Source: Auanema rhodensis
Lineage: Eukaryota; Animalia; Nematoda
Assembly: GCA_964057225.1 (NCBI GenBank)
Contig: OZ059898.1
Coordinates: forward strand, 4,402,001-4,466,000
Direction of reading: 5' to 3'
DNA length: 64,000 nt
Shown: in pieces, positions 44,372 through 64,000 of the stretch
Numbering within the stretch: position 1 is the first letter of the stretch
Layout: each line of letters begins with the position of its first letter
Translations under genes and position numbers: made by a program
Notes under the pieces: model-generated
Database searches by the model: none
What the model was told of the DNA's origin: nothing
Seen by the model: only the letters and a program-made list of their open reading frames with translations

Positions 44372-45152
44372 ATGGTAAGTTTGACTTTTAAAGTTATTTT
44401 GAAAATTTATATTTAAGAGTTCAACGCTTCAACCTTATCTTGATGCTGTCAGAAGTTCCCTTCAGGCTGCTTTGTGCCTAGAACAATTTTCTTCACAGGT
44501 TGTTGAACGACATAATAAACCAGAGGTGAGAGATTAAATAGGAAATTTATGAGTTTTTCAAAACATTTTTAGGTTGAAGTTCGTACTTCCAAAGAACTGC
44601 TTATGACTCCAGTTGTTGTAGCTCGTAATAAGCAGGAACGTGTTTTGATTGAGCCTTCAGTTAATTCAGTTCGGTAAGCATACCGTAATTATTTATTTTA
44701 AATTTTTGTTCAGAATTTCTATTGCTATTAAGAAATCAGATGATATTGAAAATTTTCTTTGTCACAAATTCACTAGATTTATGTGCCAACGTGCAGACAA
44801 CTTTTATGTATTAAGAAGGAAACCAATTGAAGGTTTGTTACATTTTATTCGACGTTTTATATTTTCATTTATATAATCATTTTTTTGAATTTAATTTTTA
44901 ATTGTTTGAAACTCCACTATTTTGGTTTTAGACTACGATATATCCTTCTTGATTACTGCTGCCCATACTGAAACTATGTATAAGCATAAAGTTGTTGATT
45001 TTCTACTTCATTTCATGCAAGAGATTGATAAGGTTAGTTAATTATAAAAACTTTTTAAAACATTTTTTCTGCAGGAAATTAATGATATGAAGTTAGCTTT
45101 GAATGCTAGAGCACGTGTGTCCGCAGAAGAATTCTTGAAACGATTCAATTAA
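44372..45152 (+). CDS. arx-6: Arp2/3 complex subunit 4 (ARPC4, p20)
   Basis: 6 exons; the first coding exon is ATG only (ATG|gtaagt). [40 protein letters not shown]...[17 protein letters not shown]. Confidence 0.97.
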
Positions 45153-45657
45153 AGCTCATGAATTTATGACCGACAAAGAATTATAATTGCTCACTTCAAT
45201 CACTTCGATCTATTAAACGGCTCCTTTTCTCGCTGCCTTATAAACATAACTTTAATTGTCCAGATTATCTATCTTCCATACTTTAATTTATTGCATTAGT
45301 TAATTTTCATACTGTAAATCATTCGTTATACACAGCTTTGTTTCTCTTAAAACAACCGTGGTTAACCATCTATATCATGAGATTGTTCTCACATCATATT
45401 TGTATTTTCTTAGGTACGGCTCTTCCCTACTAGAATAGTATGATGACAATTCATGACTTTAATATTATATTTAACAATCACCAAACTACTGTGTGTGTGC
45501 TTTATGGAGTATTGTTTTTTTAATTTTTACAAAATAACTCAGCTGTTTTAATTTATTATACTGGTTACATCTTTTGTTAATTTAATTCTTTATAAGGGTT
45601 TTTCCCTTAAAATCTATTTCATTGTAGTTGTTCTGTTATAATTTTGATTTTCTTTAG

Positions 45658-46543
45658 ATGCGTATATTAGCATTTCTGGCAGTATTACTTCAATTGTCTT
45701 TTGCGGAAGAAATTTCTGTTCAGGAAAAAGGAGTGTTTAGTATTGAAGGAAATGTAAGCTACTGTATAATATTTATGTCAATTATAATTTTTAATTTAGG
45801 TTATTTTCCCAGCTAATACTAAAGATCAACTTTGGGCTGCTAATTCACGTGTTATTTTGAATCATGGACAATACCTTGGATTTGTACAAGATGATGGCTC
45901 ATTTGTTGTTAATAATGTTCCTTCAGGAAGCTATGTTGTACAGGTGATTTTATCTATTTTTAATTTCATAAATGACTATTTTTATGTCAGGTTGAAAATG
46001 TAGACTTTGTTTTCGAGCCTATTCGTGTTGATATCACAGCTAAAGGCAAAATGCGTGCTCGTAAATTGAATGCTCTTCAGGTTGGTTCACATTTTTTGTC
46101 AGTAATGACATATGTTTTTATAGCCAAACACTGTTAACCAACTACCATATCCATTAAAATTAACAGCTCGGGAATCAACAAAATATTTCCGTAAAAGAGA
46201 AGAATGGAGAGTCACTGACATGTTGATGAGTCCTATGGTTTTAATGCTAGCACTTCCACTTCTTGTGATGCTTATAATACCAAAGTATGTGTTTTCTTGA
46301 AAACTTATGCGGTTTAAGATATTAGTTTCTTAATCTTATAATTGCCCTCAAATTACTCATTACAAAACCAAACTTGTTTTTAGAATCGCAGCTAATGATC
46401 CAAGTCTTCAAAAGGAAATGGAACAAATGCAAATGCCCCGTATGGACATGCCAGATCTTAGTGAAATGTTAGCAAATTATATTGGTGGTTCTAAACCTCA
46501 AAAGAAAAAGACAGGATCTTCGGGAGCTTCTAAGAAAAAGTAG
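45658..46543 (+). CDS. emc-7: ER membrane protein complex subunit 7 (EMC7)
   Basis: 5 exons. Signal peptide MRILAFLAVLLQLSFA; GFVQDDGSFVVNNVPSGSYVV, FEPIRVDITAKGKMRAR, YFRKREEWRVTDMLMSPMVLMLALPLL (TM), MPDLSEM; lysine-rich end. Confidence 0.93.
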
Positions 46544-46762
46544 CAATACTTTGAAAGAATTCTTATTTAATGTTCATCATATTTGAAAAGTGTTTTATCT
46601 ATGTCGTTTCTATCAGGAGTCTCCGTTTTTATTTAATCCGTATTATATTTTATTCTAGTTTCTCATCATATTTAAGATGATTGCTGACATGAATGCGGGT
46701 AGTTTAATAAAATTGAGAACATTAAGTTAGTCAATATTCAAGATTATATAGTTAATATTCTG

Positions 46763-48961
46763 TTATACATCCGGTTTTCCGAATGCCTCTATAATCTGGA
46801 CCATACTGGCATACGTTCCTGTTACAAATCCAAATAAAGCAAAAATCATCAGAGAAATATTTCTTAGCCAGACCCATTTAGTGAGGGCTCCTCTGAAAAA
46901 AACGATTTCATACTAAAATATTATATTCACCATACCTCGAGTAATAACACAATAATTCAATCATGGGAGGGAAGACTAATGTAAGAGAGGTTCCAGCAAG
47001 AGAACCAACTAAAGATATAAAAAGAGCTAGATGAGGGATAAGTTCAGCCATAGCACCTGAAACATTAAATAATTAAAGATATGTTAATCAAAGATGTTTA
47101 CATGTGAATATAACTCCAGCAAATCGTGCTCCGTAGATCAATTTGTCTTGACGTTGCTCTGGGATCTGAATAAATTAATTTAATGTATCATTAATTAAAT
47201 ATAAAACTACCTTTCGTTTAATCCATTTCTCAACACGTTCCATTGGAACATAAAATTGTAATGGATAAGAAACTAATATACATCCAACAAACATAATTTT
47301 AATACATTGATAGAAACTAAAAAAGGATTATTACAATCATTTATTTATAAAAATAAATATATTCTTACTTTGTTTGTGGTAAATTTAATGTTAATGTATC
47401 CATTACAGCATCTCCAAATCGAATATAACCAAAGAAACTGAAAAATTATAATATTTGGTTTCTTTTTGTATTAAAGAATTCATACCCTACAGTACAATAT
47501 AAAAATAAGACAAGTAGACAAGATGTATTCAAAACTCCATTTTTAGTAATAAAATGAATAGGTTCATCCATAAGATTTTCAATAGGAAGAACCTATGTTA
47601 TAAAGATGTTTTATTTTGATTAATGTTATAACTTGCACATACCACAGCTACTCCTTCAAAAGCAAACATTACAGTTCCAAAAAATAGTGGCAAGTTTTTA
47701 ATTTCTCCAATTGCAGGTAATGACCATGATGGACGACTAAAATTTCAAAAATTTTAATTTTACCTAAATGTTTGAACGAACTCAAGTAGGAAAAGTTGTT
47801 GAAGTACTATAACTACAGCAATCAAATAAATAAAATTAGCAACAGCAGCTAATGGAGCCAAAGCCTTAATTATAAGAAAAATCAAAGTTTTTCATTTAGA
47901 AATATTCAATTTTTACTTTAAGCTCACGTATAGTACATAAAGCCAATATAGGTATTAATAGTAATGCAATCCAGCCTGATTGTGAAATATGAATAGATGA
48001 TGTTTGATCGAAGAACTTAAAATTATCTATGAAAATTGAAAATAAGTATGTAATTCAAACTTGTTTAAGGTTATCAGCCATGAAAACAAAATAAACACAA
48101 CAAAATCCAAACTGAGCTACGAACATATTCGTATTAACAACTTGTCTATATATTTCATTAATTTATTTTTTAAAATTAACCCTCACTTCCAAAAGTAGCC
48201 ATAATCTCTAATCCATGATGGTCCAATTTCTACAGCTGAACGCATAACATTGGCATAATCCAGACGCTGCTGAGATTTTCTGAAGCAAATTTTTTTTCAA
48301 AATTTCTTTCTTCTTTTTCTTTTAGTTTTTAAATAAAATAAAATTAGGCATACAAATAAGCAATATAATGCTGAGAGTAGACAAGTTGGCGAGTACAGTA
48401 TATACATATTGAGCAAATAGCAACTAAAAGAACCAATCCAAGCTAGAATAGAAATTATTTTATCTTTTCGTTTTTATAATATATATATGTTTTTTTATTA
48501 TTATATTATATTATTATATAATATAAAATCTTACCCATAAGCCCGCATGTTTGAAAGCTAAAGGCAGAGACAACATTCCAGTTCCCATCATAACCTAAAT
48601 AATGAATTTCCTTATTTGGTTTCGTAAAAAGAAATTTTTTTGAAAGATTTAATGTTTATTTATTTATTTTTCTCACCTTAATCATATGTATAAGGGCTTG
48701 ATCTGCTGTTATAGAACTACTTTCACGGATTCGAGGAGCAAATAATTCATTCATTGGTGGTGATCTGTTACACGAGCCATACGGAGTTATTAAATTAAAA
48801 GTATTTTAAAGAAAATTTTAAAATTTTGAATAAATTCATTTCATTAAAATTCTTTTTTAAAAAAAGTTGTTCTTTTTTTTGCTTTTTAAAATGTTTTACC
48901 TGCTTCCCGCAATAGGTAATAATTCATTTCCAGCCATTGTACTGAACGACGATACAGACAT
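46763..48961 (-). CDS. Proton-coupled amino acid transporter, SLC36 family (Aa_trans)
   Basis: About 15 exons. [98 protein letters not shown]. Ends EAFGKPDV*. Confidence 0.93.
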
Positions 48962-49042: not shown

Positions 49043-49271
49043 ATTATTGATATAACCGTCGTTGATAAGAATAAAAAAATTTTATCTCAAAAAATATTAA
49101 ACGAATGTTATAATCAAAAAAAGAGAAGTTACTGAAATGAATTTGAAAAAAAAAGTAAAAAAACGAAAATGTCAGATAACAGATTGAAAAAGCTATGTTA
49201 CAATCATGTTAACAAGAAAAAGCCGTAGCTTGAGGAGAATTTTGATAAGAAATGCTAATCAATACTGATAA
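49043..49271. promoter_or_regulatory. Cluster of GATA sites upstream of the SLC36 gene
   Basis: TGATAA at 49043, 49243 and 49266, and AGATAA at 49174, all within 300 bp of the SLC36 5' acceptor. Confidence 0.35.
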
Positions 49272-50031
49272 TACTATATCTATCTAAAAATTGAAGTAGC
49301 ACAGAGAGTTGCTTCCTATGATCTCTTATATCAACGTTCGATCTATATAAAGAATTTTAAGATATTAATATTTGAAAGGGAAATTATATTATTAAGAATA
49401 TCATCTTCTATGCTTTAATGTATAGTTCAATATATATATTTATAGTTTGAACAAGTTCAAATATGAGAAATATATATTAATGATTTACAATACAAATTAT
49501 TAAAAAAAATGAATGGCGCGTAGATATTTTTATAAAAATTCTATAATTCGAATCTCCCGGCTATTTTTACTACGAACTACAACTTTTTGCTAGAAATAAT
49601 AATCAGTTGTCATCATATATCCATATATAGTTAACATCTATTACAAGTTATTTCATTAAGATTAAGAGTTTACTTTTCTTTTTCTCATAATTTATAATAA
49701 TAATCATATATATTTTATGTTCAATTATGTGACAACTTGGTGTGAACATAATAAAACATCTGGCTCTCATAGTTTGTTCATAATCAATCAGCGTTATGTC
49801 TTTGATGTTGTTTAGTGTTAATTATCTATATAACCGTAGGTATGTTCATATAGAGTTCACAAAGCTTATATGGTAACAGATGTACAATCTGAAAAGTATA
49901 TAAAGGATTATTAACATGATGCATGAATCTGTATATTTCACATGAAATGATTGTCTTATACATGTTTTGTAGTTTTTTTTCGTTTTCTTCTTCTTCTTCT
50001 TCTAATGAAATTTTGTTTTTCTTTGTAGACC

Positions 50032-51863
50032 ATGCCTTCAATGTACGTAGTTGTGGACTCTCTTTCAACTCAACAAAGGGAATATCTATCAGGATTATTT
50101 GTATGTTATAAACATTATATTTTAAATTTTTTCTAAATATTTAGCAATATTATAATAAGGATCCTTATGCGATTGTAAATGATTTGAATATATTTTGTAA
50201 TAATAATCAAGAATATCGTACATCTAACGGATTACCACCATCTTCCCCACCACCACAACAGCAGCAGCAGCAGCAAGATGCTCTGGCGCCATTAGAAACT
50301 GTTAGGGCTACTAATGCTGGTACTTCGTCCGGTTTATCTTGTGGAAATTATGCAGAAGGTTTGTTCAAAGAGTTTATATATATATGAGAATTTGTGTTTT
50401 TAGGATATTTCTCTAATAATTATTCAAATTGTTTATCTAATAATTATCTTGAAAACTCACCATATGCTTATGGAGCAAATGATATGAGTAACTTATACTA
50501 TGGATTCAATAATATGCCAAATAATCAAATTTATAATTCAACAATGGCTGTATCTCCTACTTCAAATTACAATGCTAGTGAACAGTATAGTCCAAATATG
50601 CCATATACTACTACTACTACTGCTGGAAACATGAGCAGACATTCTGATGAAGGTTTCTTCTCTGAGTCATCATTTGCTTCTTGCTCAACAACACCTAATA
50701 CGAATTCTTCGTGTAACAGTTCTCCAAGTGATTGTTTTACTCCAGGTTAGTTATTGTCTATTTGTTCGTCTTTCAATATGTTATGTTTTCAGATAATGTT
50801 TGTTCTGAAGAGAAGACAAAGAAATCTTCTGCTGGTAGCAAGTGTGGGTTATCTAGTAAAGAAGATACCTCTGTAACTATTTTATTTTTTCAGTCGTTCT
50901 ATGGGCGGTACTGTGTGATGCCTTTATGAATCCACAATATTCTGGTTCTATTCGCATATATGGGCAGAACTTGGAAAAGATTTCTTTTGTAATCGATGAC
51001 ATGAACCAACTCACTAACATTCTATCAAATTATACAGCTTCGGTATATTTCTCTTAATATTTTAATATAAATAATAATTTTTTTCAGTCTAAACTAAAAG
51101 GACGTATTAGTACATATTTATGGAATGCTGTTCAAAGAGGTTTACTCAAGAAGATCAAGAGAAATAAAAATGTAGCATATGTCCTAACTGAAAGTGCTAT
51201 TGAATGCTTATCACATTTTCTTGAAAAGAAAAATCTTTCACTTGATGATTTCTTCTCTAAAGTAACTTCTTCATCCCAATTACAACATGGTATGTAATTC
51301 TAAAGAAAATATTATATTATAATTATTTTCATTCAAGATATCATGGAAGAAGATGAGGATGAGGATGATGATCAAACAACACGTAAACGTGGAAAGGCTG
51401 GCCTTATCTGGAATATTATAATCGACTGTCTTCTTGATCCTCTTAACCATACTATAGGCTTTTATGGTGGAGAGGGCAACAAATTTGGCTTCTGTATTCG
51501 TAGTGTTGAAGCCTTGTCTGATCAACTGTTTGGATGTCGTGGTTTAACTAGAGTGAGTACTGTAGTTAAATATAATATAATAATATTATAATTTAAGGGA
51601 GAAAAAACCAGAAAGTTACGTATTCTTTTATGGAATGGTACAAACATTCAAAAATATATTGAACGTGTGAATGGTTTGTTTTTGATTAATTGAAATACAA
51701 AATATTTTTATCTTTCTTTGTTTTAGGATCTCTTTCAAATTATCATTTTACTACTCGATCGTTCAAAGTTTTATCTAAAATTTTGACAGCAAGAGATTTG
51801 AAAGTTGAAGATCTGAGGAAAATGTGTCTGGAAAGTTGTTCCAGACATCAACTAATGTACTAA
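50032..51863 (+). CDS. Orphan protein: Q/N/S/Y-rich N-terminus plus two tandem divergent ETS-like winged-helix domains
   Basis: 9 exons splice into one open frame (introns 50101-50144, 50359-50403, 50746-50792, 50844-50893, 51043-51087, 51290-51337, 51553-51597, 51674-51726). Starts MPSMYVVVDSL, ends RHQLMY*. Gene structure is well supported; the domain call is inference. Confidence 0.8.
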
Positions 51864-54800
51864 CGTTTTAAAAATTCTAATAATTTTTTCTCTTTAACAA
51901 ACTGACTAAGTCTCGTCTTTACTAACTATTCCAACTTTTTATTAAGTTGAATAAGTTAGAAGATTGTTTTTTACCCGGTTATTTGTTTTGACATGGATGA
52001 GATTCCTATATTTTTGATTCAATTCGCTATAATAATAATAATTTTTAAGAAAAAATGACAATTTTGTTATTTTTTTAAACGTTTTATTGACTTTATCGTG
52101 TTCAGCTGTTATTGTTGTCTGATATTTACATGTTTTCTAAACATTCAACTTCAGAATGATTTAGTTTATCATCTTTCAACTTGTATCATCTTTTCCTTAC
52201 CAGAACTAACTCTCGGATCTCTTATTCTGGTCATTCACATTTATAATTTCTTACTTAGTGTATATATGAAAAAATAAGCTTAATATCTAAACACTGAATA
52301 AATTGAAAATTTGGCAAAAAATGTTTTTTTTTTTTAATTTTTTAGGATACAATACCATATATATATATCCATATTAATATATAATTCAAATAATTTATAA
52401 CAAATTTAAAATGAAATAGCTTATTAGGTGAAATATTCTTTCAAGATACAAGAAATATTTTTAAAGCTATGTTTAACAGTATGTTTTAGCCTTTATATAT
52501 ATAAAAGGTGGGCTACAGTATAATTCTTAAAAAAAACTTGTAAAAGTATGATTCAAAAACATAATCGTAAGAGGTTAGATGCTTGTCTGAATCACAAAAA
52601 AAAGAACAAGACAAGCCAGACAAAGAGCAATAGGGAGGCGAAATAGGCCAGGAATCAGAGAACGTTTTGAGATGTCTTGGCAGTTAGGCTTGTTTTCATT
52701 TATATTTCTCCTTGTTTGTATCTTTTATATTTATGAGCAATTTCAAAATATTTTTGTGAAACAGGATTAAAAACACGAAGAGCATACAGCTAATGCTATA
52801 ACTTGTATGTTACAACATTTGTTTTGATATTAATTTTTGTAATAATCGGAGGATAAAGCGATATAATCTTTTGGAAAGTTGGTGAATTTTTAACTCTCGA
52901 AACGACATATAATTTAAACATTTATTTTTATTATATTATTTATAATTTATATTTTAATTGAAAGTTATAACTATATAAAAGGTTTTTTTTAAACTTTTAC
53001 ATTTCATATAGCATAAGATGGGTGGAGTCTTATGAGATGTGATGTCCAATAGGGTTGCACCTATGACAGTAACCAATGAATTGATTTAACCTTAAGTTTT
53101 GTATATATTATCATACACATTACATATTTAAATGATTTTTATTAATCTTTTTAATTATTTTTTAATTATTTTAATATATTTCATGAATAATTATACGTTA
53201 ATAACAATTTATATATCTAAAACTTGATAAGTTATCAACGTTTATAAATAATCTTTGTAGGTTTTATAACTATTTTGTAACAAAACTGTCTATATATGTA
53301 AGTATTATATGTTTTCATTCGGAGAAATCATTTAAAACAATTAAAATCAAAATCAATTATCATTTGAATTCTTTGCAAAATTGAAACTGTTTACTTTTAT
53401 GACGTAATGGTTCGCTAATCTAAGGCTAGTCTGATGTTCTTTCATCTTTTCTATCGTGCTTGACTATCGAAGGAAGAGGGAGATTTGTTTGGGTAAATGG
53501 GTCCACACATCGAAAGCGAAATGGGTGTTCGGCCTGAGATTCTCTGTTAAAGTCATAGTTGTCCAAGCGAATTTTCCGTGTTAGGCTTAGCATCATGGCC
53601 GTGACTGTATGTTGTCCCAATTTTCACGCTCAACGCGCTTGAAGGAGAGATGTATCTAGCCCTTGATGACGACAACTTAATTTCTCTCTTTCTCTCTCTC
53701 CCTCTCCCTCTCTATTTCTTTATATTTTTCTCTCTCTGTCTCTTTATCTTTTTTTCTCCCCTTTTCTCGACTATTCCCTCGTGTTCTTCCTCATCCGTTC
53801 TCCTTTCCTCCATCTTCCACCTCCAGTCTATATCAATTTTTTTGTTTTTCTCTTCGCTCTCCTCATTGCATTTCCTTTTGACCCAACTAACCAAAGCCGT
53901 CGTCTTCATCGTAGCAGCAGGTACACCAACAGAGTTTCACATAGTTATGCATGCTCCGGAAGCTTTACAGTAATCATGCGTATCATATATGTTTCCATTT
54001 CAACACTTTTTCCTTAGTCATAGCATCTTCAACAATTTTTTTCATATTCAGATAATAGTTTTTCTTTTATTCATATCTTATTCTTTCTTTTTATATTTAT
54101 CGTTTACAATTTCTAAGTCTCTCACTGCTAACGGTTAATCGTTTATAAAGAAATCTTTTTTTATTAAAAGAATATACAGTATCGTTTTTTTCTTTTCAAA
54201 AATAAATTTGTTGAATACTATTACATATTCTTATTTTGTTTTCTTTAAAATTTTAAATCTTTTTCTTTTCATTTTATGCTTAATTTTAAAATTTGTTTTT
54301 CAAATCAGAATTTTAAATATATTATTATAATTTTCTAATTTAACATATTATACATATATAATTGATTTTTAAACTGTTTCTCTTCTTTTAATGTCCTGTT
54401 TATCTATTTATCAATTGTCGCTTCCGAACAGCTTACCTCCTTATATGGAGATCCCATGACCTTGTGTCTGTTGCCCAATTCGCGATCTGACGAATTTCGG
54501 TCGACACGCACTTAGCACTTCTTCGTCTCTTCGTAGTCATCATCTTCTACTCCTTCATCATGTTCATTAGAAACTTTTAGAATATATATATCTATGCATT
54601 ATATATACTATAGATATACCATATAGTTTAAAATAATTTTTATTAAATATAATATTCATATACGTTTGTATATTCTAAAACAAAATTATTTTTATTTATA
54701 AATATTATTATACAAATGTCTAAAAAAACAAATTTTATAGATAATTAGTTTATATATTAGCTTTTTAAATTAAAAAAAATATAATTAAAATTATATAATT

Positions 54801-57265
54801 AGTATAAATTATCATTTTAACATATAGTATATATGAATACTGTATAATATTCTTAAACAAAAAATAAATGATAATACTTATATGAATATATATAGTTAAT
54901 TACATATAGTATATTATAAAATATATTTTTATTTTTCAATTTTTGTTTCAAATTATACTTCCTTTTCTTAAAAATTTCAAAAAAAAATGATTTTAGCTTT
55001 CCTTGAAAAAAAGCTTTTTTCTCGATTTTTCAATTTATATTACTGGGATGATATAGCATAAGATTGTGTAGTTCTTAATTTTTATTTCATTTGTCTACTA
55101 CGAAATGTGAAAAAAAAAGAGAAACGAAGATATAAAAGAGCTATGTCCTTGATATGATAACTGACTGATCCGACGTTGCCAGTAGACACCTTGTCATATC
55201 AATCTAAGTGTCTGCTTTTGATTTTTTGATTACCTCTGATTAGACACATCCTATAATTCCGTCGTGTCTATTAGCATATATTATTATATTTTCTTATTAT
55301 TATCAGTTAAAAATATTATATTTATCATTATATATCTTATTTTTTCCTTTTAAACTTATCTGTTAAGCTAAGCTTGATTGGGGGAAGGCTAAAAGCCAAT
55401 GCACAAGGAGTTTTATCATCTAGAGTTTCTCTTCTATCCCTTTAGCTTCTCGGTAGTCTAAGAGGATAATAAAGAATGATTGAAAGTAAGAAGGTTTAAA
55501 GCATGTTCCTCTTCCTGTTTCCTATTATTCTCACCCTTTCACTATCTCTGGTATACCGAAGAGACTTATAGTTGTCTCTCTCTCTCTCTATGTATCTTGC
55601 TCGATGTATCGCGCTTTTCCTATTCCCGCAGGTCTATTGGGCTTGGTTTTCCTTACTTATCTTACGTTTAATTTGTATCGCAGTCTACAAAAATACAAGA
55701 GACTCATGCATTACTGGCCTTTTAAATCTCTCCTGCTTTCCTTTTACGTGGTTTCATGCTCTCAAAGAGAGACTACTTCAATATCAAGTCTTCCTCCTTC
55801 TCTCTTCCTCTCTCTCTTCCTCCCTCTCTCTTTCTCTCTTTTTCGTTCTTTATTCTCTTGATTTTTCCAAATCCTATGTAGATTCTTTCATCGTTCTCCT
55901 TGCTTCTTCCTATCCCCTCTGGTACTAGTTTAGTATTTCGGGTCACTGCATTGTCGCTAATCGTCTAACGATTTCTGTGTTGCTGTTCGGTCTCTCTGTC
56001 TCAACTATGTCCCCTTCTTCGTCATCTTTCCTGATCCCTTTCCTTTTCTTTATTTGTTATGTATTTATATGTTTGGAATAAAAAAGAAAATTATTCTTCA
56101 GTTGACCCATCCATTCACCTCTAAGTATGCTTGTTCCATCAATCTAAACCTTCTTCCGCTTTTCCTGCAAGCTGTACTTCAAGTTTAAGAATGCCTTCAA
56201 AAGGTTTTCTGGTATTCTTTTACTAAAAGATACATCTACATTATACTTTTTTAAAGTTTAATGCCAGTCTTAACTCTTTTTTGATTAAATTCGAGTACTT
56301 ATATTCATGAAAATTGTAATTCTTGTGTAATTCATGAAGATTTTCTATTGACATATTCAGAAGTTCAGATGGTGAACTCATTGCTTTTTTAGTCGTTTTC
56401 CCTTTTCCGTTCACAATAATCTCTGCTTTTCTTCCTCATTTTTAGAATGAGGTGCAGTTGACGCATTGTGTCCTCAATCATGATGGCTGAAGCAACGCAA
56501 GGGTTTCTGCCCTCATTACTAATCGTCATTGCCTTCCATTTCGTTTTCACACACTTCTTAGGTCGTTTTTTGGCCACAAATTTTACTTATAATTAATAAT
56601 CTTCTTCATATTCTTATTAATTTTTTTATATTATATGAAATATTCACGAGAAACATGCAACTTGTTTACATCTACCTGTTCAATATTGCAGCTCAAGAGT
56701 ATGAGTTGATGCATCATTTTGTTTTTTTTCCTCCTTTTCCTTATGTAATACCTCAATACCATTTTGAATATTATGCAAATGGACTTCCATGCATAGCTAC
56801 TAGCCTTACCTTTCTTGTCATCTAGTTGTTGTTGTCATACTTTGTTGTCAACCACAGCTATGTCTCCGTCTCCGATATCGTCTTCGTTGTCGCTCTCCCG
56901 TGATGACCCGACTAGTGTACCCTGCCTAATTTCGAGTTCAGGTCTTGCGCTAGTTGCAGGCTGCGCAACTTCTATTCTAATTTAGTATTTCATATTACCT
57001 TCTCTCTAATTGAGGTAAAAGAGGGAAAAAAGAAAAATGTCACTATCTCTTGCTTACTCTGGCTAACGATTTTCAATTTTGATTCTATCCTTTGTTCTCA
57101 ATTTAAAATAATAATTTTTGAGAGTTAACTGTAACTAATCTTCTATTAACCATATAATATGTATTTTGAGTTCAATGATAGTTCGCACTCCTATCTTATA
57201 TTTCTCTCAATTCATATATTATCTATTAGGTTTTTGAGTTATTTTAACAAAACTAATAGCACATA

Positions 57266-57966
57266 CAGTCCTGTGCGAAATAGTTGGGACACCCCTATGT
57301 TAGAGGCCCCAGAAAACCCCTTCAAACTACAAAAAAAAATTTTTTTTTAATTTCAAAAATTTTGCGAGTTCATATAGTTTATATTCAGTCAAAATATATG
57401 TTAATATAACTAAAACTGATTTAAATATTGTTTTCTAAATTTATAAGGAAATTTAGTGTTTTTTGACTATTTTGAATAATCCCTTTTGATTTAACAAAAT
57501 TTGAGATTAGGAACATTTTAATTCATTAAAAAATATTTTAAAATGATTCTAGGCACAAAGCTCAATCAATAACTAAGTTTTTCCTATGGCATAGCTTCAA
57601 ACAAGTAAGCTTCAGCATCTGAATCTTACTGAATATCTATGAAGATAACTTGGTTAACATACAACCAAATTCTCCCGTTCAAAAGAAAAAATGACGTTTA
57701 GTGTACTCCTAACATTCTATAAAAAAATTGTTTCTGAAGTCTTGATGAAACTTCTGAAATTCAAAAAAGAAGACTTCAAGCAGTTTATGAAAATTTCGGA
57801 GACTCCGGAAAATACTTTTAAACATAATTTTTTGATTGTTTTAAATTTTTTCTAAGTTCATTATCATTTTTTAACACTCAAAATATATTTTTTCTGATTT
57901 TTTGTAGTTTGTCTGAGAAGGTATAAGGGATTCTAGTGAGTGTCCCAACTATTTCGCACAGGACTG
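57266..57966. mobile_element. Non-autonomous Tc1/mariner-type element (MITE), 701 bp
   Basis: Perfect 27-bp TIRs CAGTCCTGTGCGAAATAGTTGGGACAC (57266-57292 and 57940-57966). TA target-site duplication (57264-57265, 57967-57968). Subterminal inverted AAACTACAAAAAA (57324-57336 and 57898-57910). No transposase ORF. Confidence 0.93.
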
Positions 57967-59078
57967 TATGTAGTTGGCAAACCAGTTTATATGTGTATAT
58001 TGCCACCATGTTATCCCTGTTTTAGCTGTATCAAATACGCGAGAGTGAGAAAATTCAACCAATACTAACATATAAGTTCAATAAGCTATATATTTTGAGG
58101 TTTTTTCTATTATATATTCTCAAATACTGCGTAAGTTTTAGTTTTATAGATATATAAAATATTTATTTTTTTTTTAAAATGTTATTTCTTATTTCTTTTA
58201 TTTAAAAATTAATATTCATAAATTATCTAAATATGTTGTTATGAATTATAAAATTGTCTATATCTTGACCCCTTGAGGCTATTCTTTATTTACTTAATTC
58301 ATCAACTTATATACTCAAAATAGCATCATAGTTTAGTCCTCAACATCCAATCTTAATATTTGACTATCTTCATCCATTGATTCACTATTTTAAGTGTTAG
58401 TTGATGTAAAGGACCTTCAAATCAAAATTTACACACATCTGTATGTATAAATGGATGTATGTTTCATCGTTATTATATATACATATAATAATATTATATA
58501 AATTGATCTCTTAGGTAATCTGAACCAAAGAAAAAAATTCTATTTTTCAAAATAATTTATATTATAAATAAACTTTTAATAATTAATTATGTATTTATAT
58601 AATTTTTTAAATTCTTCTTTTATTTGTTTTTTTAGTTAATTTTATTATATAAAACTTAAAATAATATTAAATTTATTAAATTGATTTAAATTTTTTTTAT
58701 TCTTATTCTTGTATTTCTTTACTTATATTTCCTCTCTTGTTCGTTATTCTGTATTTCCTCTCTTGTCTTCTCACAACATTTACCTTTCCAAGAGCTATCG
58801 TTATGTCCTTCGTTCATGGTTTGACCGCCTATCCTGACTCCTCCCCCTCTTCATGCATCCGAATCCTCCAGGCCACGTATGTCGTCATCGCACTTTTGAC
58901 TCAGCCTCATTTGGAACTTTCTTGTAGTTTCTTAATAGGTTTTAATATCTATCTGCCTATTTATCTATCTATTTATATTTCTTTATTTTTTAACAAAATT
59001 TTTTACAATATTACTTCTCTTTTCTGTTAAAATAAAATTATTATCTCTTATCGAACCTCAATATTTTAATTGTTGCAG

Positions 59079-59620
59079 ATGGAAACGATTTTACCGACCA
59101 TCGTAAGGCCCATCTTTGCTTCTGTCGGTAACAACCTAGAGCAACCAAATAATCCTGAATATTCGGAAAAAACTGTTGGTCTTGAGGGATGTGCCGATAT
59201 TTATGATGCCGGAAAAGATGAATTTATGGAGATTACATATAGGTATACAATATGCTTTTCATATTACTTGTGTTTATTGGTACAATATAGAGAAATGGAG
59301 GAAGATTCTGGTAGTCCATCATCACCAGATGAGGCACGTATGCCTGTCGATGGGTCTCGAGGAACATCAGACTCCTCACCCTCCGGAAGCTCAAGTGTTG
59401 GAAATGCTTTTCGTGCTGATCTAAAACGTCCTGATCTCAAAGGTACCGTATATTAAAATAAATTGTTTTTCAATATATTTATGAATTATTTTCCTTTCAG
59501 GAACATTTCGTTGTTCTATTTGCTCTAAAGTCTTTTGTCATTCTTCTTCATTATCACGTCATCGAATGCAAGCTCATTTCAAGAGTTACAAATGTACATT
59601 ATGTCGAAAAGATATAACAA
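59079..59620 (+). CDS. C2H2 zinc-finger transcription factor, nematode PAT-9/ZTF-2-like family (5' part; continues beyond the right edge)
   Basis: ttgcag|ATG; exons 59079-59242, 59291-59442, 59501-59620. ...AFRADLKRPDLKGTFRCSICSKVFCHSSSLSRHRMQAHFKSYKCTLCRKDIT|gttagt. The second finger is interrupted and its remainder was not found in the window. Confidence 0.85.
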
Positions 59621-62600
59621 GTTAGTTTAAATTTTCTTTAATTTTTAATTAAAAAAATGAAAATATTGAATACAGTGAATATTAAAAAATATTTTGTATT
59701 TCTATTACTTGTATTACTTAATATTCTAAACTCATTACTGGATAATCTCAAAGTTTTAAATATTTTAATTTGAAAATTTCTAAATTTCCATATGTAAACC
59801 TTTATATTAAAGCTAGTAGATGTTGATTTAAAAGACTAATAACTTAGATTACCAACATATATAGAACGTAAACCAGCATTACAAAGCTGTTGACCATTAG
59901 TATACATGTTGTTGTGATCTAGCCTAATAAGGAGTAAGACAAGAATAATTCTCATAAACTACTGAAAAATCTTTTTATCTCTTTCTCTCTATATTACATT
60001 CTTCCTCGTTCTATTACCTTCTATTCTTGATTATCTGTTATCACAGTGTTCTTTCCTTTTCCTCTCACAATTTTTTCTTTTCTTGACCCATATTGACCAT
60101 TGAACAAACTTCATTTATGGATAAGGCTTTTCAAACCGTTTAATCGTCATTTCAATTTTTCTTATCATCTTTGTTATATACATATAGCTAGTATATAGGT
60201 ATATACATACATATATCTCTTATTTTCTAATTAAGAATTTAATGATTATTCCTGTTTAATCATTACAACACTTAATACTTGAAAAATTATTTTACTTCAT
60301 GTTTATGGATAGTTCCCACTTAAGCAAATCAATTAGATGGAGACTTAAGGTGAAATATAGTACATCAGCTGATCTTAGAAACAGAGCTAAAAGTGTATGG
60401 ATCATCTAGATGTATCCCGTATGAAAATAAAAAGAACAAAATAGATATAAATGAAAAGAGATATTATAGAGAGAAAGAGAGAGAGAGAGAGAGAGAATAA
60501 ACGTAAATGAATGTTTAGTGAATCTAAAATGAGCTGGTAAATATAGTTTTTGTTCGGAAACAGTTTATCATTTGCACTATTTGGATTAAAACTACTATGT
60601 AGGTATATAGTATCATGATTAAAAACATAAATCAAGCTAATTAATCTATGTTTTCGATGATTTATTGCAATATCTTTACTTCAAATATATAACAAATTAA
60701 ATATTATTTCTGTATTCTATAGAATCAATCATAATTTCCGGTATAGTATTCGTAAAAAGTTTTCAAAATGTTTAGAAAATTGGATGAAGGAAAGTCATGT
60801 TTCTTTTCTAATGATTATGTCCTTATTCTGCGCGAGTTAAGCCTTTTTTTCTTTTTTTGCTTCAAGTCTAGTATCCGCGATAACGTGGCCACTTCACTTT
60901 TCTTCGTTTCCTCTTTTCTGTTTCTCTCTCATATTCTTCTGTCCATCTAAGGATTAGCCAATGATCTTCACCGGAACAACTCCAGATTTTCTAACAAATC
61001 CATGGCTCGGACTGTCACCCGTCAGTGAATTGGAGGTACTGCCTGACACAGTTATGACCAATTATGGAAGGGCGACGAACCGAGAAGATGTTGCTACTGA
61101 CCTGTGCATACGTATATGCCCTAGAGGCGGTTTTGCTGAAAAGTGAATTGACGTTGTCCTCATCTACTACCATGGGTCATTAAAATGACTATGCAAGTTT
61201 CAAAGACTTGAAGAAATAATCAAGACTCTCCTTTCTCTTTTCCTTTTTTTCATTTATGAAGGTAGGACGATGTAAAGACAAAATTATTGGTACAAGCATG
61301 AGTGGATGAAATGGTTGGCGAAAATGTAAGAAGTGACTATTACTGACCTCATCATGAGACAACAATGTGGTTTTATTCCGATTTTCACTTCACTTTCATC
61401 TGTAGAGTTTGATCTCTATATACGGAAACAACTACTTTCTACTCGATTGCATAGTCCCAGTTAGAATATTTGGCTGAACAATTGCCTTCATGAAAATTAT
61501 TCGACCTATGAATGAATTTCAAAAATACGTAACATGCCATTTAACCAATCTATCTAAAAATCTTATAAAGTTTATAATAAAGGTTATATAGTTAATATAG
61601 AAATATTATCATATAGTTTCTATATTTTAAAAGTTTTCAAGCTCTTAGCAATATCTATGTAATCATTAATATTATGGTAGAAAGAGTGATATATTTAGAA
61701 GATCATGTATGACCTAATATCTCTTTAAATGCAGTCATAGCATTCAGGACATAAATCTAGTCAATTGCCTATTGACACATGTCCGAAGCCGCTTATCTGG
61801 AAGAGAAGCAAGCTATTTTACGGTTTATTCACCTATCTCTTTAACTACATGTCAATTTGGTGAAGATCAAGACGACATTGGCGACAATCCTCGCAAATGA
61901 TATCATCTGGATCTTTTCTGAAAAACACATCGAACCAAATATGTCACAGAGATATAGCAATTGAATCATCTTTTGATGTTCAACAACAATTTTGACAAGC
62001 GATATCTTTATTTTTTAAATTATTTTGTATATATAATTATATATTATATTATTATATATATTCATAAGTTTTTAATAGAAATTCAAATTCAAATTTCATA
62101 TGATATTTGTTGTTGTCTTTCGAGTAACCTGATGGAACATGTATCTAATTAGGCTAACAAATTGTCTGATTGCAAAACGAATACTTAAATTCAGCCTGTA
62201 TGCGAGATCACAATCATCAAGCAGAGATATAAATTAGTGGGCAAATGAGAGAGAGAGAGAGAGAGAGTCAGAGAAATAGATATAGAGAGAGGGATAGAGG
62301 GATATAAAGAAGAAAATGTGGATGTGACCTGAGAAGGCCGTCGTTCACAGAATGAAAGTAGTGAGTGTGTTGCGTATTGTATCCAGGCCGTTTTCGCTTT
62401 CCCGTAGATGGTTCGTCGGTTGCTGCTTTGCATCGACGTTATTGTCGCCGTGGGCCGTCAGTTAGCCATTACTTCAGCCACGACCACATGAAGATATCCC
62501 GAAATGGAGCTCGATATGACGCAACAACAATGAATAACAACATTCTGACGATCTCACACAAACATTATAGATATATTAAAGAAGGGACTAAGAAAATGGT

Positions 62601-63071
62601 TAATGTTCAAAACTTAAAACATAAATATTATAGTTTAATAATTAAATAATTAGAAATATAGTAATATTTATATAATAAAAGAATATATTATTATAATATA
62701 ACTTATAATATAAAAAAAACTTTTTATAATTTATTTCCCCTTATATCTAAATTATAAAATATTGTATTATTAAATCAAATATATATATAATACAATTATA
62801 ATTATTATCAAAATAAGGATTACAGTATTTGAATGTTTCATAGTTTTTTCTTTGGAATATTTGATCATATTTCATATTCTGTATTTGACTTTTACATCAT
62901 TACGTCATCACATTTAACGGATTGACCATCATGAGTTCACGCATCAAGCTGAACAATCAAGAAACAAAATATTTCTTTTACTATACTACATCTATAATAA
63001 TAATATTATTTTTTTATTATTAATATAATATTTTTTCTTTTTGATTAAAATAATAATAAAATTATTTTAAA

Positions 63072-63073
<2 letters not shown>

Positions 63074-63108
<35 letters not shown>
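63074..63108. repeat. (AT)n microsatellite
   Basis: Seen directly. Confidence 0.9.
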
Positions 63109-63112
<4 letters not shown>

Positions 63113-64000
63113 AATATATATATATTTCCCTCATAATTTTATATAAACATACAAGTTGTAGTTAAAAAAATATTTTTTATACTGGTCAGTATCCGGTTTT
63201 TCTTACATTTTCATTTGGTTTAAAATAAAAAAATAACCCGCATGTTTTGAAAGCAAAGGTCTGTTTTCTCCTCACATAATATGCACAAGGTTTATCTCTA
63301 GAGGAAAAGCCGATTGACACATATTAGAGACCAGCCAGCTCATGTACTCCAAACTAGGCCAAATGCATTTGAACGGTTTTTTTTGAGATGAGGCTTGATT
63401 CTACCTTTAGGATTATTGCAAAACTTTCTCTTGCCTCTCCCTTTTCATGTCCACTTTCATCCAATCTTTTCCTCAAAGCATATCTCTTTAGTCGTCCTGA
63501 CTACCGTAGTCTATATAGTTAATACCGTTGTGTCAATGAATTGTACATGAGTTGTAAGCATATAACAATAAAGGAAAAGAAGAAAAAAGAAAAAAGAAGC
63601 AATAGAAAAGAAGATTCAAGTAACTAGACATTTTCTTTTTTTTTCCATACCTTCATAGTTACATTCAATCTTGTCTGCTTTTTTCAATCCTCGAACTTCT
63701 GAATCAAACCTAATCTCCTTATCGTATATTCTTTTAGCCATTTTAAACTTTTTACTCTTTATCTTTCTTTTCTCTCATAGATTGTTGTCATGAAATTAGA
63801 CCTGTTAGTCGTTTGAATAAAACTAGTCAGATTATCAAAAGTCTGATGAGCCACATTCCATGACCTGTCCCTATGATTCTGATACGAGACAAGGCATGAA
63901 GTAGTAGCAGTTAATGTGCTAACTACCTGATACAAGCAGATTTCCAGTTAGACCAGATTTTAGTTTGTCATGAGTTGTTCGGTCATTTTTAAAGTTTTGA

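Follow-up and report, generated by a model that had tools for sequence, protein, structure and literature searches.

A nine-exon gene of the nematode Auanema rhodense encodes a real, conserved and previously undescribed protein, whose C-terminal half is an internal duplication of one intron-bearing unit. Both units are predicted to fold as winged helices of the ETS type. In both, to judge from alignment, the two arginines that read GGA in ETS domains have been replaced, and the altered recognition helix is under strong purifying selection. A literature search on the twin-unit protein, on an arginine-less tandem ETS fold and on Auanema together with ETS, in which few subscription journals were covered, returned no description.

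Gene structure

The gene lies on the + strand at positions 50032-51863 of the window, the 64,000-nucleotide stretch that was analysed (contig C6:4402001-4466000), and has nine exons with about 484 codons (485 with the stop). All of its introns are GT-AG, measure 44-53 nt and are consistent in phase, and the frame closes on a single terminal stop. The exons and the open frame were found where the initial annotation had placed them, and the splice model agrees with the annotated ortholog of A. melissensis, in which 8/8 introns match in position and phase. This match settled the one doubtful site, the intron-4 donor at 50844; the alternative donors at 50835 and 50856 would keep the frame but disagree with the ortholog. 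The features of the gene are as follows.

50020..50028, + strand: acceptor-like pyrimidine tract and AG, 3 nt before the ATG; an AG stands at equal distance in the ortholog locus
50032..50100, + strand: exon 1, 23 codons, opening the conserved N-terminal segment (16/23 identical to the ortholog)
50145..50358, + strand: exon 2, end of the N-terminal segment (first 24 codons 79% identical), then Pro/Gln-rich low complexity
50404..50745, + strand: exon 3, Asn/Ser/Tyr/Thr-rich in composition with basic residues nearly absent (60% identical to the ortholog)
50793..50843, + strand: exon 4, short linker; its donor, 50844, was picked from the ortholog intron at the same K/F junction
50894..51042, + strand: exon 5, unit 1 (helix 1, strands 1-2, helix 2)
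51088..51289, + strand: exon 6, unit 1 (recognition helix 3, wing formed by strands 3-4, helices 4-5)
51338..51552, + strand: exon 7, acidic linker and RKRGK, then unit 2 from helix 1 to helix 2, starting at 51403
51598..51673, + strand: exon 8, unit 2 (recognition helix, strand 3; 24/25 identical to the ortholog)
51727..51863, + strand: exon 9, unit 2 (strand 4, helices 4-5) and the stop (41% identical to the ortholog)

The tract at 50020..50028 is probably the acceptor of an SL trans-splice or of a 5' UTR intron.

Internal duplication

The two tandem repeats that had been proposed are both present. Exon 5 aligns with exon 7 at z=7.2, a score reached in 0/5000 shuffles, and in the ortholog unit 1 aligns with unit 2 over ~118 residues (E=1e-5, 22% identity). 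The phase-0 intron described just before the putative recognition helix is likewise there in each unit, exactly 10 codons ahead of the Leu of a common L-W-N. Since this intron occupies the equivalent place in both units and the units align with one another, the C-terminal half is a true internal duplication of one intron-bearing unit. The extent of the repeat had to be revised. Exon 6 and exon 9 align more weakly (p=0.03), and this similarity indicates that the unit extends past the wing; it is therefore longer than first quoted, ~115-120 aa, and includes two further C-terminal helices.

Predicted fold and relation to ETS domains

Both units are modelled as an alpha-beta-beta-alpha-alpha-beta-beta winged helix followed by two helices. 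For unit 2, the AlphaFold2 model (pLDDT 76, pTM 0.71) has the ETS-type topology, and its input was a six-row alignment with no ETS sequence in it. A single-sequence model of the C-terminal half of the ortholog gave the order H-E-E-H-H-E-E-H-H at a pLDDT of 38 (~50 for unit 1). When the unit models were compared with 48,161 solved chains, ranks 1-10 were all ETS, with Z 7.0-8.2 for unit 1 and Z 6.8-8.6 for unit 2, a structural Z of 8 being a middling score. The best match of unit 2 is ETS1 (Z 8.6, rmsd 3.3, 102 aligned residues, C-terminal helices included), ahead of IRF4 at 6.7 and HSF1 at 5.0. The best match of unit 1 is ELF2 (Z 8.2, rmsd 2.8, 84 aligned, 24% identity), tied with other ETS chains, and HSF2 reaches Z 5.8. 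The winged helix expected of each repeat is thus well supported by the predicted models, with ETS chains as the best matches.

Foldseek placed ETS chains mostly first for the units, but 0 of them at E<=0.001. In the ESM Atlas, unit 1 leads to Ets by features (0.82, at lead level) and unit 2 leads to Ets by the Atlas's own model (TM 0.60-0.67); the AlphaFold2 model of unit 2, and unit 1 when searched by structure, returned generic winged helices there and not ETS.

In sequence, unit 1 can be aligned over its whole length (p=0.003) with an ETS profile made from separate exons of six A. rhodense ETS genes, and unit 2 alone gives p=0.11 against the same profile. In profile-profile comparison with hhalign, the units match ETS with pairwise E=0.002 and 0.0006, above 200/200 shuffles, at a probability of 13-28%. 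The curated cut-off of PF00178 is reached neither by single exons, nor by the full-length ortholog, nor by the gene in a genome scan. The same scan recovers six ordinary ETS genes, whose motifs are of the ELK, ERG (two), ELF, ESE and DETS4 types. With all six present, the idea that the twin-unit gene is a standard ETS gene otherwise missing from the genome, in diverged form, was set aside, and the position of the units' phase-0 intron is common to 0/6 of them. The units retain the helix-1 LW..L..P pattern typical of ETS as well as the wing Lys and Tyr; of the ETS tryptophans in helix 1, strand 1 and helix 2, only that of helix 1 is kept in both. On these predicted models and weak profile scores, the descent of the units from an ETS gene is likely.

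Contig C6 also carries an ELF-type ETS gene (L008, C6:3858465), some 0.6 Mb from the twin-unit gene. This gene is a possible parent of the units, yet it has no intron position in common with them.

Recognition helices

The two recognition helices were located as follows.

51094..51135, + strand: recognition-helix block of unit 1, 14/14 identical between the species; the ETS Arg, Arg and Tyr are aligned with Thr, Trp and Asn
within exon 8, + strand: recognition helix of unit 2; the ETS Arg, Arg and Tyr are aligned with Ile, Trp and Asn, and an Arg stands one place earlier

The ETS family motif, MNY(DE)KLSR(GA)LRYYY, has two invariant arginines (PMC2789578). In the gap-free alignment of unit 1 with the ETS profile, S-R-A-L-R-Y-Y stands opposite S-T-Y-L-W-N-A, and unit 2 carries R-I-L-L-W-N-G in the register of the shared L-W-N. 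The replacement of the RxxR arginines (STYLW, RILLW) reported in the initial annotation is therefore confirmed in register, for unit 1 by alignment with the ETS profile and for unit 2 through the shared L-W-N, and by this reading both GGA-reading arginines are replaced in both units. The replacements (Thr/Ile, Trp, Asn) are identical in A. rhodense and A. melissensis, and helices 1 and 3 of each unit hold one Trp apiece. As L-W-N is present in both units, the change would be older than the duplication and would have been retained since then in four domain lineages.

The change is not decay, because the helices are 14/14 and 24/25 identical between two species in which synonymous sites are saturated (pS about 0.78). 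The remainder of both units is ~50% identical. The conservation of the helix block against the rest of the unit is significant (Fisher p=2.5e-4 for unit 1 and 1.1e-6 for exon 8), for blocks that were picked after the alignment had been viewed, though at the place predicted by the fold. By this two-species comparison, the new helix 3 is under strong purifying selection. Both unit cores are basic (pI 9.2 and 9.5), and the positions in helix 3 and the wing at which ETS lysines contact the DNA backbone are Lys or Arg in both units. With both arginines lost, the units are predicted not to bind the GGA(A/T) core. Of the altered or lost DNA specificity that had been suggested, the conservation of the recognition helix favours the altered one.

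N-terminal half and linker

The first ~47 residues (window 50032-50216) are 70-79% identical between the species, a conservation equal to that of the DNA-binding units, have no Pfam match and possibly form a small helical interaction domain. They are followed by ~190 low-complexity residues with almost no basic residue, a candidate activation region by its composition. The Q/N/S/Y-rich N-terminus, the acidic linker and the RKRGK of the initial annotation are all present in the translated exons; the poly-Q run itself is not conserved in the ortholog. The acidic linker between the units is conserved there. Two short motifs are found in these regions.

50625..50678, + strand: 18-aa Ser/acidic block with DEGFFS, 16/18 identical to the ortholog
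51382-51396, + strand: RKRGK, candidate nuclear localisation signal, conserved in the ortholog

DEGFFS resembles non-canonical beta-TrCP degrons of the DEGxxS type, and the Ser/acidic block is a candidate phospho-degron or cofactor motif.

Ortholog and search for relatives

Searches were made with single exons of the A. rhodense gene or with the public ortholog protein as queries. A profile of exons 5 and 7, run against 1.84 billion representatives, found a single relative (E=2e-20), CAI4230399.1 (P0001) of Auanema sp. JU1783, which is A. melissensis (PMC9984802). This unnamed protein of 492 aa has no Pfam domain and is 56% identical to the A. rhodense protein (261/464); its gene is syntenic, with a neighbourhood that is collinear on both flanks. 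Two further entries of the search (P0002, P0003) were set aside as long repeat proteins matching over 17-19 residues only. A word search with an exon frame gave no match, and those with ortholog regions 232-492 and 405-470 returned the ortholog itself only. Pfam searches, exon by exon and with the full-length ortholog, gave no relevant match, and sequence searches of the PDB gave chance matches only.

The gene is single-copy in the A. rhodense assembly (180,911,798 bases), where a search for a paralog found none; one weak match on contig C7 (E=0.13) was rejected, as it falls in a stretch rich in Lys and Glu that looks non-coding. The term orphan is not strictly correct, as there is one ortholog. 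No known family claims the protein in Pfam, profile or word searches. The rapid evolution of the protein may conceal wider relatives: because identity is 56% between close species, and because the exhaustive profile search spanned the first half of each unit only, little weight can be given to the lack of further relatives.

Comparison with known winged-helix proteins

Like ETS factors (PF00178: ETS1, ELF1/2, FLI1/FEV, ETV1/4, ELK4, GABP-alpha), the units have the predicted topology alpha1-beta1-beta2-alpha2-alpha3-beta3-beta4, a Leu/Ile-Trp in helix 1, a basic helix 3 and wing and a Tyr in strand 4, and the protein has a low-complexity N-terminus. In the structural alignment, their C-terminal helices match the part of ETS1 that runs to residue 436. 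Unlike ETS factors, the protein has two domains in which the helix-3 arginines and the following Tyr are replaced and only the first conserved Trp is retained; identity is 13-24%, and the intron is not that of the six ordinary ETS genes. Given the score below the Pfam cut-off, the two arginines and the tryptophans, the units are called ETS-derived or ETS-like here and not members of the ETS family.

The earlier statement that ETS proteins normally have a single domain describes the usual case, but two ETS domains were found in 1/321 ETS proteins in a ten-species survey, and that one is a C. elegans protein, unnamed in the text (PMC2789578, Table 1). This "ETS + 2" protein resembles the twin-unit protein in being a nematode protein with two ETS domains; unlike the units, its domains were found by PF00178 and so are close to canonical (PMC2789578). 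It is not among the matches of the profile search with exons 5 and 7.

The units also belong to the same four-stranded winged-helix class as the IRF and HSF DNA-binding domains (Z 5.0-6.7). Against IRF they score lower structurally than against ETS, they are without the IRF tryptophan cluster, and neither single exons nor the full-length ortholog has a Pfam IRF match. The Arg of unit 2, three places before the helix-3 Leu, stands where IRFs have their guanine-reading Arg. The units differ from HSF in having neither its signature nor a coiled coil, they do not align to the HSF of the genome, and a PF00447 genome scan found hsf-1 elsewhere only and not the twin-unit gene. E2F7 and E2F8 carry tandem winged-helix DNA-binding domains in one chain and keep the base-reading residues of their family. 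The twin-unit protein is analogous to them in its tandem winged-helix duplication within one chain, although its winged-helix class is different.

Expression and genomic neighbourhood

Words of 49500-52500 are present at shares of 0.58, 0.54, 0.54 and 0.26 in the assemblies of four runs from a single 2019 study; these are probably RNA, and each amounts to about 20 Mb of contigs. The expected share is 0.53-0.57 for a spliced transcript carrying 400-500 nt of UTR and nearly 1 for DNA. Three of the four shares (0.54-0.58) are as expected for spliced mRNA with UTR, which is indirect evidence of expression. The 3' region contains one conserved short element.

51973..51980, + strand: conserved 8-mer in the presumed 3' UTR, matching nt 3-9 of a miR-35-family candidate of the same genome (shuffle p=0.012)

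This 8-mer mismatches nt 2 of the miRNA and would be a non-canonical site at best, which makes it a weak lead. A second conserved block is located at 52221-52233 in the otherwise diverged 3' region. A mir-36-like hairpin (L025 1501-1597, G000:C7:5856580-5856676) scores 31.6 bits (E=0.004), under the Rfam cut-off, and has a canonical miR-35-family seed.

The upstream neighbours (window 44400-48960, L015 1-8941) are ARPC4, EMC7 and an amino-acid transporter, and those of A. melissensis also include S11, EI24, L36e and acyl carrier protein. In C. elegans these are genes of chromosome III, which suggests that the locus is autosomal. Window 49160-49275 (L015 9115-9215) is a conserved non-coding block that contains several GATA sites (TGATAA, CAGATAAC); it lies about 200-300 bp upstream of the divergently transcribed transporter gene, and is probably the intestinal GATA-factor promoter of that gene rather than a promoter of the twin-unit gene. 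Further on, window 53485-63850 holds a run of blocks that are strongly conserved in A. melissensis, among them 54427-54520 (95% identical), 61033-61101 (91%) and 63785-63850 (91%). Several of the blocks have no open frame, and they may be small RNAs or regulatory elements belonging to a neighbouring gene.

Proposed function

We consider it reasonably probable that the protein is a transcription factor with two ETS-derived domains that read a new, non-GGA site. An ancestral ETS domain, together with its two C-terminal helices, would have diverged so that in helix 3 a small or aliphatic residue took the place of the first Arg, Trp that of the second and Asn that of the Tyr, and would then have been duplicated inside the gene, phase-0 intron included. 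The resulting protein would be a nuclear, sequence-specific transcription factor. Helix 3 of each unit would enter the major groove, the Lys/Arg that helix 3 and the wing have kept would hold the backbone, and both units would jointly read a two-part site other than GGA(A/T), the second domain compensating for the loss of contacts between Arg and guanine. Cofactor recruitment or activation would fall to the low-complexity N-terminal half, whose conserved phospho-motif may control turnover.

A bolder form of this proposal is tentative at most. It would see an ETS fold with a fully rewired base-reading code (the L-W-N helix), used in tandem on a new two-part DNA motif, as the founder of a hidden, fast-evolving family of nematode transcription factors missed by profile annotation and having a developmental role in Auanema.

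As the new helix-3 residues Thr/Ile and Trp are hydrophobic, a face that binds protein could be formed by them just as well. It is possible, though we think it unlikely, that the units are ETS-derived pseudo-DNA-binding domains, with helix-3 faces that bind a protein partner or each other and with weak or no specific DNA binding, the protein serving as a cofactor, a scaffold or a decoy for real ETS factors. The guanine-reading arginines are absent from both units and an exposed Trp is found instead, and Arg394 is described as essential in Ets-1 (PMC5062964). Against this, conservation is centred on the helix and on the basic residues that face DNA in ETS, and the cores are basic. The positions of the helix-3 and wing lysines, which contact the backbone in ETS, stay Lys/Arg.

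Even less probable is an origin of the units outside ETS, from the wider ETS/IRF/HSF four-stranded winged-helix class, as an older unrecognised nematode family diverged beyond detection. The absence of a Pfam Ets match would fit such an origin, as would the ETS lead over IRF of only about 2 Z for unit 2 and the presence of all six ordinary ETS genes, none with the units' intron. The protein also evolves fast, at 56% identity between both Auanema species against mostly 80-100% for its upstream neighbours. However, separate methods rank ETS first, the helix-1 LW..L..P pattern, the wing Lys and the Tyr are retained, and the HSF domain of the genome remained unaligned (E=0.63, in a weak single-sequence control with the first helix absent and intron letters included).

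A structural chromatin or nucleic-acid-binding role, such as RNA binding or the reading of the 29-bp palindromic elimination motif of programmed DNA elimination, is very improbable: two binding units would suit a two-part site, and A. rhodense cuts at a palindromic motif for which the available part of a preprint names no reader (bioRxiv 10.64898/2026.08.27.747507), but no observation ties the gene to elimination, it has no nuclease domain and an activation-like N-terminus, and a similar motif is described there for Oscheius, yet no Oscheius homolog was found among the profile and word search matches.

Significance

ETS is the standard case of near-fixed specificity, in which an Arg-x-x-Arg helix reads GGA(A/T). 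With both arginines swapped, the domain duplicated and the helix frozen, the twin-unit protein would be a natural test of whether the ETS fold can be reprogrammed, and its two units also probe whether a second domain can replace lost affinity. Should the units not bind DNA, the protein would count as a pseudo-ETS scaffold, a less striking case and still an undescribed one. Auanema is a three-sex model with RNAi and transgenesis, and the protein suggests that transcription factors invisible to Pfam sit among its unannotated genes.
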